From Pocillopora damicornis (lineage: Eukaryota), in contig NW_020844515.1 in the NCBI RefSeq assembly GCF_003704095.1, forward strand, positions 124,001 to 188,000: a DNA stretch of 64,000 nt, given 5' to 3'. Shown in pieces: positions 61,388-64,000 of the stretch. A program made the translations under genes and the position numbers. Position 1 is the stretch's first letter. The number at the start of each line of letters is the position of its first letter. The notes under the pieces are model-generated. The model did no database searches. It was given only the letters and a program-made list of their open reading frames with translations, and was not told where the DNA came from.

Positions 61388-62551
61388 TCATCCCATCAGT
61401 AGTAATAAAAGTATTGTAAGTGAGTTAAGCAAAATAAGAGGTACTGAAAAATGAGAAGAGAAGAAATAACTTTTACAAGGGTGAGAATTTGAATCATCAC
61501 TTACTAACCATGCATTCCTTTTCATTTATTTATACATATTTATTTTCTAAGATGTAAGTATACTTACTGAAAAATATTGTGTTGTCACTGCTAGTTTGAT
61601 TTGTACGTCAGATTTAATTGACAGAGAGGCACCAATTCAAGGCCAGTTTGTTCATTAAGAATCAAAGATCTAAGAAGCATTTTGACATTTAAAATTCTAG
61701 TTGAATTTTGATGGCTTAAGCTATTTCCTACTCATATGGAGAATAATTAAAAGTCACTTTGCACAATTTTCTTAGTACTACATTTCTCTTTAAAAACCCA
61801 GTTAATCAGCTGTCAAGCAACTGGAAGGTGGAGAATACTTTACAATGTTAACCATGTTATACCAACTTAAACCCTTCAACTTACTTCTCATAACAGTCCT
61901 GACTGAATGTATGAGATTAATAACTTGGTGTTTTGTTCCTCTTTCGTCTCCAAATCCTGAGAGCTGGTCCGTACCCCATCCAACTGGAACAGAGAAAATA
62001 TAAAATTCACCAAATATCCCCAACACCTGTCACCTCTCCCCACCACTATGCAGTGTACACTCAAGAGGTGGCCAGCTGTACGCAGCAAATAAAACTTGAT
62101 CCTGTACATAACCCTGTTGGTATACCAAGGTTCTACAACGTTAAATGTTCCAATTCGATCCTTAAAAGTACCTAATTCAAAGCGTGACTTTAATAGCGAA
62201 CGCTGACTCAGTGAATTGCATAAACCGCGTGTTTTCTTGGCAGGTAACCGCGCATTTCGAGGTAAGAACCAATGAATTACCATATCTCTAGATTGAAAGT
62301 ACATTGAAACTGAAGACAAAGATACCCTGAGATATTCAATAGGATCTATTCTGAGTATTCCGAAGTCATTTATAAGCTGATAATCAGTAAACTAATTGTT
62401 CACCGTAAATCAAACAAACCTTTCTCTGAAAAATGACAAAAATATACACATGTAACTTACTTTTCGCCAGAAATCGCTCCTCGTGAAGCACTGCAACAGC
62501 ATTTACCACTAAAAGACAGGCTTCGAGTAAACTGTAGAATGTGAACGCCAT
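61388..62551 (-). CDS. IER3IP1: Immediate early response 3-interacting protein 1 (Yos1 family ER membrane protein), 81 aa
   Basis: Exons 62551-62461, 61983-61885, 61443-61388: MAFTFYSLLEACLLVVNAVAVLHEERFLAKIGWG...NLIHSVRTVMRIPLILLNSLTILLLLLMG. Confidence 0.95.
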
Positions 62552-63096
62552 CTTGGATTTTCTGACGTGTAAACATGCGCATTGATATCTTCGAAGATTT
62601 CGTACCCAGGGCTTTGCGATATGTATTGTCCCACTTCCGCCGGATATGCGTTCACGCGCAATATGGCGGCAAACTGATGCAACTTTTAACCACTTCGTAT
62701 TTTCCCCCACCAGGAAGCTTATCCTCAACAATTAGTCAGAACCAGTTTTATTAGAAGAAAGTGAAAGCACTCTTTCTACCTCTATCGCTAGAGAACCGGT
62801 CTGGAAACTTACAAACGGCGCATGATGTTCAGCACAATCCTTTCTAGATCGATGACGATTTTGAATTTTAGAGATGATGCAATTTGCGTGATTCAGTTCC
62901 TAAAATGATCATCAAAGTTTCGAGGAACAAGGGGGTGTAGCATGTACGTGGCATAATGTGAAAGAACCACATTTCTTCCGACGTGGTCTTGAGACGTAAT
63001 ATAAGTTCACCAACAAAACCTCTTCTTCAAAGTTCGATTTGTCTCTTCAGTCAGATGTCAGTTAAGAGCCATTCAATTTCAAGAACAGTGTTCAGG
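62552..63096. promoter_or_regulatory. Bidirectional promoter IER3IP1 / small HSP with ACGTG-core (XBP1/CREB3/UPRE-like) motifs
   Basis: TGACGTGT 62563-62570, ACGTGGC 62946-62952, GACGTGG 62980-62986; TATA-like AATATAAG near 62998. Confidence 0.45.
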
Positions 63097-64000
63097 ATGA
63101 AGAGTCTTCTCCTATTCTTTGTACTCGTGGTAATAAGTGGTAGAAGTGAAGGTTCATGGTTAATGAGCCAACCCTTCGATGATTTTGGGTGAGTGCAGTA
63201 TTTAAGTTTTTTTTTTTTTTTTTTCTCCACGACACCGTCCAATGGTAAATCGCATGGCAGGTTTATGAGAATACCTATCATTTATTGTTTAGCTGTCCGA
63301 CCAGATCTGTAGATTCGTTGCCAAATTGCTTTAATCGGGACTGCCTGACCGTATCTAAGAAACCCTCAGTCATAATTATCTATGCAACTGAATTGGTAAA
63401 GCAATTGGGGACACTCAGATTTTAATTGACTGGTTTTATTTGTTGACCTTGACGAGATGTTTGGCAGTTACATCCCACAACCAGATCCCATCGAGTTATT
63501 TTTAAGAGTTTGACAGCTTACGGTGGAAAAATTGAAAAACCAAGTTTTCACAAGGTCTTCAAAATTTACTAACTAGGGAATGTCGCAATAAATAATATTC
63601 TCTTAGCGCATATTGTTGTGAAACCATAATCTCAAACTCTTATTATCTAGAAGGGACCTCACAAACTCTTCCTCACACCTTGTTGTTCTGGAACTTCCGG
63701 ACTCTCCTTCCCGTTCCCGGGACATCGAATTCCTTGTAAAACACCGTGATGCGTGTGAATATCTTTCGTTATCGCAGATTGTGGCACAGAAATAACTTTC
63801 TTGACTTTGTCAACTGGGATCCATTCGAAGACGATCCGTTGGAAACGGCCTTTTTCCACAACCAAGATCCTTATTTTCCAAGAATACACAGAACAATTGG
63901 TGCCAGTCATAGACCAGTTTCGTACCCATTCGTGAAACGAAATGACGAGGACGTTTTCAAACTAGTCTTGGACGTCAATGGATTCAATCCGAGTGAACTT
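63097..64000 (+). CDS. Small heat-shock protein (HSP20/alpha-crystallin family) with an N-terminal signal peptide, 3'-truncated by the window
   Basis: Exon 63097-63188 (MKSLLLFFVLVVISGRSEGSWLMSQPFDDFG) joins in phase 2 to an exon from 63778 that stays open to the window end: LWHRNNFLDFVNWDPFEDDP...NDEDVFKLVLDVNGFNPSEL, i.e. a WDPF motif plus the start of an alpha-crystallin domain. Confidence 0.75.

Follow-up and report, generated by a model that had tools for sequence, protein, structure and literature searches.

A two-exon small heat-shock protein gene of Pocillopora damicornis with a predicted secretory signal peptide, conserved across a hexacoral clade

The stretch of DNA analysed here, referred to as the window, comprises 64,000 nucleotides of a Pocillopora damicornis contig, and its right-hand end carries the 5′ part of a gene for a small heat-shock protein (sHSP). 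The remainder of the gene was read from downstream DNA of the same contig (L002, whose positions plus 62500 give window coordinates). Taken together, two exons read from the contig DNA encode a product of 30 + 1 + 202 = 233 residues (Table 1). The ATG at 63097 has an A, a purine, at position −3 and opens MKSLLLFFVLVVISGRSEG/SW..., and the exon that it begins ends in the donor GG/GTGAGT (63188/63189), beyond which an unspliced reading meets an in-frame TGA at once. The acceptor, ...TCGCAG/A at 63777/63778, follows a pyrimidine-rich stretch, and the split codon (GG+A) encodes Gly. From 63778 the frame stays open past WDPF and FKLVLDVNGFNPSEL as far as the window end and continues uninterrupted for another 387 bases up to the stop, giving exon 2 a length of 202 codons.

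Table 1. Features of the sHSP locus, in window coordinates
Feature	Position	Strand	Remarks
Window	NW_020844515.1 (G000:C1150), positions 124001-188000	+	Reference frame for coordinates
TATA-like AATATAAG	63008..63015	+	About 40 nt upstream of first in-frame ATG; possible core promoter
Upstream in-frame ATG	63055..63057	+	Pyrimidine at −3; adds 14 residues (MSVKSH...), total 247 aa
Exon 1, coding part	63097..63188	+	30 codons + 2 bases of split Gly codon; end confirmed by spliced RNA
Predicted cleavable signal peptide, 19 aa	63097..63153	+	MK, 10-residue hydrophobic core, SGRSEG; Ser at −3, Gly at −1
Intron	63189..63777	+	589 nt, GT..AG, phase 2; contains T20 run
Heat-shock-element-like TTCnnGAAnnTCC	63686..63698	+	8/9 core bases, within intron; weak evidence
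In-frame ATG within intron	63749..63751	+	29 nt ahead of acceptor; opens 212-aa ORF (P0181) deposited for contig
Exon 2, in-window part	63778..64000	+	Stop TGA at window-equivalent 64385-64387, then 3′ UTR
WDPF motif, N-terminal region	63815..63826	+	P and F nearly invariant in family alignment
Alpha-crystallin (HSP20) domain	63938..64000, ending at window-equivalent 64213	+	Exon-2 residues 54-145

The frame of exon 1 offers two possible start codons. The RefSeq model of Pocillopora verrucosa (P0182) begins at the equivalent of the upstream ATG at 63055, and this codon and its frame are kept without indels in a Stylophora-like contig (L021). In both pocilloporid genera, a pyrimidine occupies position −3 of the 63055 ATG and a purine that of the 63097 ATG. 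Outside the pocilloporids, the 14-residue extension was found in none of the genera compared (Montipora, Porites, Acropora and Nematostella). The Montipora reading frame has a stop 7 codons before its start, in mRNA contigs that end in poly(A), and the Montipora protein must therefore start with the signal. As judged from the sequence, a signal-type N-terminus results from either start, 63055 or 63097. A third in-frame ATG lies within the intron, at 63749, and is the start of the ORF model deposited for the contig. It is probably not a real start, judging from the sister genus: in the Stylophora-like intron, no in-frame ATG occurs from the last stop up to the acceptor. We therefore rejected the intronic ATG and its 212-aa ORF as a conserved product and regard the model P0181, which carries no signal peptide, as an ORF-calling artefact.

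Splicing of the two exons is documented in RNA. One contig of a polyA metatranscriptome run (X1) joins 63188 directly to 63778 (L002 687/688 to 1277/1278) and skips 589 bases with GT..AG ends, with 29 letters on the shorter side of the joint, where sides under 30 are flagged. Other contigs of the same run stop exactly at the end of exon 1 or start exactly at the beginning of exon 2, and a separate contig covers the intron. An independent Logan contig (L016, 1924 nt) matches L002 158-688 and passes from there straight to 1277-2682, and its ORF reads ...FDDFG/LWHRNN across the junction. The same join is present in the database protein P0179 and in the P. verrucosa RefSeq protein XP_058956382.1. 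The sequence-only reading of the window had placed a GT-AG, in-phase splice between exon 63097-63188 and an open exon starting at 63778 with WDPF and FKLVLDVNGFNPSEL; all of its coordinates proved correct, and the junction that it expected in transcripts is the one carried by the X1 joint and by L016. Furthermore, at least eight lineages have the same signal-type exon ahead of the orthologous domain exon, so the two-exon reading reflects more than chance.

Contigs that run unspliced through the intron also exist, in runs X5, X7 and X14 and in ten Stylophora-like contigs. We rejected these as evidence against splicing because they are contigs rather than reads, several carry adapter and poly(T) sequence, and others run into the convergent downstream gene; some of them look like antisense or DNA-derived sequence. 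Three of the Stylophora-like contigs (L022, L024 and L025) begin at their left ends with adapter or non-templated poly(T), followed by intron sequence (window-equivalent ~63310-63320), and are colinear from there through exon 2 and ~445 nt beyond. Such starts look like polyadenylated antisense RNA that ends in the sHSP intron, perhaps as the 3′ UTR of the convergent downstream gene. Two further features of the RNA contigs lie 3′ of the coding region. In all four runs, a short stretch of the 3′ UTR (L002:2001-2100, window-equivalent 64501-64600) has 10-20 times the contig depth of the sequence around it, and many loose ends occur there; it is probably a dispersed repeat. Further downstream, at L002:2210-2508, runs X5, X7 and X14 skip 297 bases with TC..GA ends, a segment that includes a long poly(C) run; this is an indel between strains or species and not an intron.

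On the 5′ side, the gene lies head-to-head with a Yos1-like gene (IER3IP1-type, Pfam PF08571, E 8.7e-9) on the minus strand, whose first exon spans 62384-62731; the gap of ~550 nt between the two start codons is bridged by RNA contigs. A scan of 1300 nt found no canonical TATA box. The TATA-like AATATAAG does not settle the transcription start, because the RNA contigs extend much further upstream, at least 440 nt from the ATG and into the Yos1-like neighbour. The same 1300 nt hold two heat-shock-element-like sequences with 8/9 matches, including the intronic TTCnnGAAnnTCC, against ~0.3 expected by chance by our own estimate, which places them near chance level. We accordingly make no claim of heat inducibility from sequence.

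Having been searched separately, exon 2 alone matches the Pfam HSP20 family (PF00011) with 47.3 bits against a cut-off of 20.8 (E 2.3e-12) over profile positions 3-101 of 102. The domain, of which only the first part falls in the window, is thus complete in the downstream DNA, where it had been expected from the window sequence. For the structure we turned to a natural full-length protein, the P. verrucosa ortholog P0182, which is ~96% identical in exon 2. Its AlphaFold model has a mean pLDDT of 60.9, rising to 82-91 over the domain (residues 96-180), which forms seven strands; the signal is modelled as a helix, and the regions flanking the domain are of low confidence. In Foldseek, the domain of this model matches the cores of Hsp27, alphaA/B-crystallin and SIP-1 with TM scores up to 0.85, the Hsp27 core 4mjh superimposing with TM 0.85 and rmsd 2.3. 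Among solved structures, the closest by sequence are that of C. elegans SIP-1 (4ydz, E 1.9e-7) and then those of vertebrate alpha-crystallin/HSPB cores.

Within the domain, proteins of the clade described below have 2-4 cysteines, compared with 0-1 in sHSPs outside it, in raw counts that ignore kinship. In exon-2 numbering, C99 is invariant, C105 occurs in at least 90% of the sequences and C88 is mostly kept, so that two near-invariant cysteines six residues apart form the motif C-x5-C-W-R-R-x-L-P. In the P0182 model, C133 lies at the end of one strand and C144 ahead of the next; C150 is inside this second strand, which is the dimer-interface strand in metazoan sHSPs. The C-terminal tail carries a second signature, the acidic motif ATVE[IV]VPD[DE], which is nearly invariant in the clade, with tails varying after VPD[DE]. 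The nearly invariant V-E-[IV]-[IV]-P near the C-terminus fits, as a pattern match alone, the I/V-x-I/V anchoring pattern.

The N-terminus encoded by exon 1 is of the signal-peptide type. The Pocillopora signal has an uncharged run of 13 residues and reaches a maximum Kyte-Doolittle value of 3.79 in a 9-residue window. All seven orthologs with a known N-terminus have 12-15 uncharged residues, small residues at −3/−1 and few charges, and in the orthologs of Porites, Montipora, Acropora and Nematostella the small-residue site is followed by S-[LWF]-L. The layout proposed from the window sequence, a basic residue, a hydrophobic core and a small-residue cleavage site, thus agrees with the sequence metrics, from which entry into the secretory pathway is predicted. 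A KDEL/HDEL-like signal had been suggested as something to look for at the C-terminus. None is present: the product of the locus ends in ...VPDDNVESDSQ, and no ortholog tail in the family alignment is KDEL-like, which points away from simple ER retention. There are also no conserved N-glycosylation sites, which weighs against the secretory reading.

The signal exon is conserved well beyond Pocillopora. It is kept in the Stylophora-like contig L021, in Porites evermanni (P0016), in Montipora (P0017/XP_068694465.1), in Acropora digitifera (LOC107348279) and in the sea anemone Nematostella vectensis (XP_001639719.1), so that the check proposed from the window alone, a search for cnidarian orthologs that keep the signal peptide, was passed. 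The guess that the animal was probably a coral was also right, the nearest named proteins being those of P. verrucosa and Stylophora pistillata. Between Pocillopora and L021, exon 1 is 80% identical without indels and exon 2 is 87% identical, with the intron at 76% and 41 gap columns. In two more distant relatives, P0041 and P0050, the domain exon is preceded at 225-245 nt by a mini-exon of signal type; that of P0041 ends in ...CQG/SYLMNFPF, followed by a GTAAG donor. Distant members of the clade with such a mini-exon occur at L031:3776-3880 and L033:919-1015, in a metagenome scaffold from ENA and a contig from Logan.

To place the protein among sHSPs, we considered both the genome's own paralogs and homologs from elsewhere. 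The genome holds at least 13 HSP20 matches, mostly in tandem-domain genes on three contigs (C1457, C625 and C1365). These other sHSP genes (C1457:109-147 kb, C625:126 kb and C1365:247 kb) encode mostly tandem two-domain proteins; the C1457 cluster comprises at least four of them, one copy being interrupted by an assembly gap, and a short upstream exon seems to be present in most of these genes. When a profile of the coral proteins was compared with 1.84 billion representatives, XP_001639719 was the best full-length single-domain match outside stony corals (E 2.1e-29), and searching it back in the genome returned this locus with E 1.1e-19 and the next locus with 5.5e-4. Multi-domain matches to the profile (P0030 with six repeats, and P0037) were rejected, since their high scores arise from summed repeats and they have no cysteine motif. 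In a tree of the domain, a branch with support 100/98 has on one side the window protein, all coral homologs, the Nematostella protein, P0041, P0050 and P0032, and on the other the genome's own paralogs together with bilaterian sHSPs. There is, then, a hexacoral clade of signal-peptide sHSPs that stands apart from the genome's other sHSPs.

Public gene models represent this clade unevenly. Full-length RefSeq models with the signal exon exist for P. verrucosa (XP_058956382.1), A. digitifera (LOC107348279) and Montipora (XP_068694465.1), the last under the name "spore protein SP21-like"; the coral models are uncharacterised or misnamed. The S. pistillata RefSeq model, a "heat shock protein 23-like" protein of 180 aa, is N-terminally truncated and has no signal exon. 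Expression or proteome studies that rely on the contig model or the Stylophora model would therefore miss or mislabel the signal-peptide protein. The databases also hold a disrupted allele. In one Pocillopora lineage, a one-base deletion turns GAGCTTCTT into GAGC-TCCT at window-equivalent ~64025 (L016:700-900 versus L002:1440-1640); the reading frame is lost after ...LAGRELL, which cuts the alpha-crystallin domain short, and the transcript is still spliced. Four database proteins carry this frameshift (P0012, P0178, P0179 and P0180, from several Logan/ENA contigs), and its presence indicates that the gene is dispensable in at least one Pocillopora lineage.

A gene of this kind is already known from another sea anemone. 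Working on Anemonia viridis (AvHSP28.6/AvHSP27), Nicosia et al. (2014, PLoS One 9:e105908; PMC4175457) cloned AvHSP28.6 and reported that it has a single intron, an exon 1 consisting of the ATG and 32 residues, and an exon 2 with the domain, the tail, the 3′ UTR and WDPF-like motifs. Its predicted signal sequence (residues 1-20) overlaps a predicted transmembrane segment (5-27), in the authors' view a first among sHSPs, and they discuss membrane insertion (PMC4175457). XP_001639719 clusters with AvHSP28.6 and has the same two-exon structure, and AvHSP28.6 is expressed constitutively and induced 3-8-fold by heat, cold, Cd, Pb and LPS (PMC4175457). The Pocillopora gene resembles it in having two exons, a short exon 1 with the start and the signal (~31-32 codons), and an exon 2 that holds WDPF, domain and tail. 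They differ in length and order, AvHSP28.6 having 248 aa and belonging to Actiniaria, whereas the Pocillopora product has 233 aa and belongs to Scleractinia; the two are linked via Nematostella and the tree of PMC4175457 itself. A word-indexed protein search with XP_001639719 found only that protein itself. The idea of a secretory sHSP in such an animal is thus less new than the sequence-only reading had supposed, a signal sequence on a two-exon anthozoan sHSP having been predicted in 2014 (PMC4175457), and the Pocillopora gene is a further example of the kind described in silico for AvHSP28.6. The present analysis adds the junction in Pocillopora RNA, the cysteine and tail signatures and the lack of a retention signal; it also shows conservation across the sampled stony corals, a sea anemone and other relatives, and that some public models omit the signal exon. 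Neither the conserved cysteines nor the spread across corals is reported in PMC4175457, and the literature searched contained no paper on AvHSP28.6 or the coral loci after 2014.

Comparison with other sHSPs sets the clade off more sharply. The Nematostella protein XP_001639719.1 (P0038) is the reciprocal best match of the Pocillopora protein and shares with it an N-terminal signal-type segment, the C-x5-C-W-R-R motif and a corresponding acidic tail (TTIEIIPED), but identity over residues 53-234 is only 34%, its N-terminal region is longer and its domain contains two rather than three cysteines. Plant ER-lumenal sHSPs likewise combine an alpha-crystallin chaperone with a signal peptide, and they end in a C-terminal ER-retention tetrapeptide, a tail that the coral and anemone clade does not have. 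The domain of the clade groups with metazoan sHSPs, and its origin is therefore independent of the plant ER proteins. Human HSPB1 (Hsp27), alphaB-crystallin and SIP-1 have the core domain fold and the WDPF motif in common with the clade, but they are cytosolic, have no signal peptide and carry at most one domain cysteine, in contrast to the fixed i/i+6 pair plus a third in the clade. HSPB1 carries a cysteine in its dimer-interface strand through which two subunits can be disulfide-linked. For an insect sHSP of oviduct secretion, a signal peptide is not reported (PMC12152657). A search of the literature found neither a localisation experiment on the present protein nor its occurrence in nematocyst or skeletal-matrix proteomes.

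Taken together, we consider it likely, with a probability of roughly 0.7, that this two-exon gene encodes a 233-aa sHSP (247 aa if the upstream ATG is used) with a cleavable ER signal of 19 residues, that it is a member of a clade of signal-peptide sHSPs in hexacorals, together with XP_001639719 and, by the literature, AvHSP28.6, and that its product is exported in soluble form and acts as a holdase. The nascent chain would enter the ER co-translationally and be cleaved after SEG (Gly19), leaving a mature protein of 214 aa that keeps the WDPF region, the alpha-crystallin domain and the acidic tail motif. Given that there is no KDEL/HDEL signal, this protein would be expected to leave the ER and to move on to the cell exterior or to a post-Golgi compartment, where it may act as an ATP-independent holdase. 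In an oxidising environment, the pair of cysteines at and within the dimer-interface strand and the third at the end of the preceding strand would probably form disulfides. Cysteines at i and i+6 may lie on the same face of the interface strand, so that an antiparallel dimer could pair i with i+6′. Alternatively, the first two cysteines might close a loop and leave the third free for an inter-subunit bond, as in HSPB1; either arrangement would suit an oxidising compartment.

Other fates of the N-terminus have to be weighed against soluble export. The hydrophobic segment could instead stay on the protein as an uncleaved signal anchor, tethering the sHSP to an ER or post-ER membrane in type II orientation. 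The overlap of signal and transmembrane segment 5-27 predicted for AvHSP28.6, and the membrane insertion discussed for it (PMC4175457), are in line with such an anchor, as are the long basic n-region that the upstream ATG would supply and a maximum 19-residue hydrophobicity of 1.6-1.9. However, an uncharged core of 12-15 residues, the length found in every ortholog, is short for a membrane span, and it is always followed by a small-residue −3/−1 site and S-[LWF]-L; we thus consider a membrane-tethered protein unlikely. We give a very low probability to the idea that the N-terminus directs the protein to mitochondria or another organelle, as in Drosophila Hsp22 and the plant organellar sHSPs, especially with a start at 63055, which would place a basic, Ser-rich stretch before a hydrophobic sorting segment. 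That 14-residue extension does contain three basic and no acidic residues and several Ser/Thr, and it is kept in the Stylophora-like DNA. Yet it is absent in Montipora (with its upstream stop), Porites, Acropora and Nematostella, whose N-termini carry 0-1 positive charge and then an unbroken hydrophobic core, the pattern of a signal peptide, and the −3 positions in both pocilloporid genera, a pyrimidine at the upstream and a purine at the second ATG, also speak against it. No amphipathic basic presequence of the Hsp22 type was found; the proteins begin with 0-2 basic residues followed by the uncharged core.

It is also conceivable, if distinctly improbable, that the signal form is a minor or additional isoform and that the main product is a cytosolic sHSP made from the intronic ATG at 63749, on a transcript that starts within the intron, possibly under the heat-shock-element-like sequence at 63686. 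This very 212-aa ORF is what public databases list for the contig, and an 8/9 match to a heat-shock element lies 50 nt upstream of the ATG, but the codon is not conserved even in the sister genus and the match is near chance. A contig of run X7 covers L002 992-2210 at a depth of 16.5, against ~3-4 for the exon 1 region, although contig depth cannot rank the parts of a gene, and the contigs that start with adapter and poly(T) suggest antisense polyadenylated RNA rather than sense pre-mRNA. Finally, the conservation of the signal exon from corals to Nematostella argues against a main product that does without it. A soluble, secretory sHSP thus remains our preferred reading of the locus.

It is tempting to speculate further that this hexacoral lineage of sHSPs works outside the cytosol, as secreted or post-Golgi proteins (in mucus, the calcifying space, the symbiosome or cnidocysts), in dimers stapled by the cysteines of the interface strand, a proposal to which we would give slightly less than even odds. 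To our knowledge, animal sHSPs are treated as cytosolic, nuclear or, rarely, mitochondrial. If the proteins are indeed secretory, corals and anemones would gain an ATP-independent chaperone in places where no ATP is available, such as mucus, the extracellular calcifying medium and the space around the symbionts, all of them directly exposed to heat stress. Conservation in both major stony-coral lineages and in Actiniaria indicates that the gene is not an oddity of one species, and the fixed cysteine pattern gives a structural prediction that can be tested. Should the proposal hold, the lineage would offer the first case of an animal sHSP made for the secretory pathway, and its proteins would be candidates for maintaining protein stability outside the cell in corals under heat stress.
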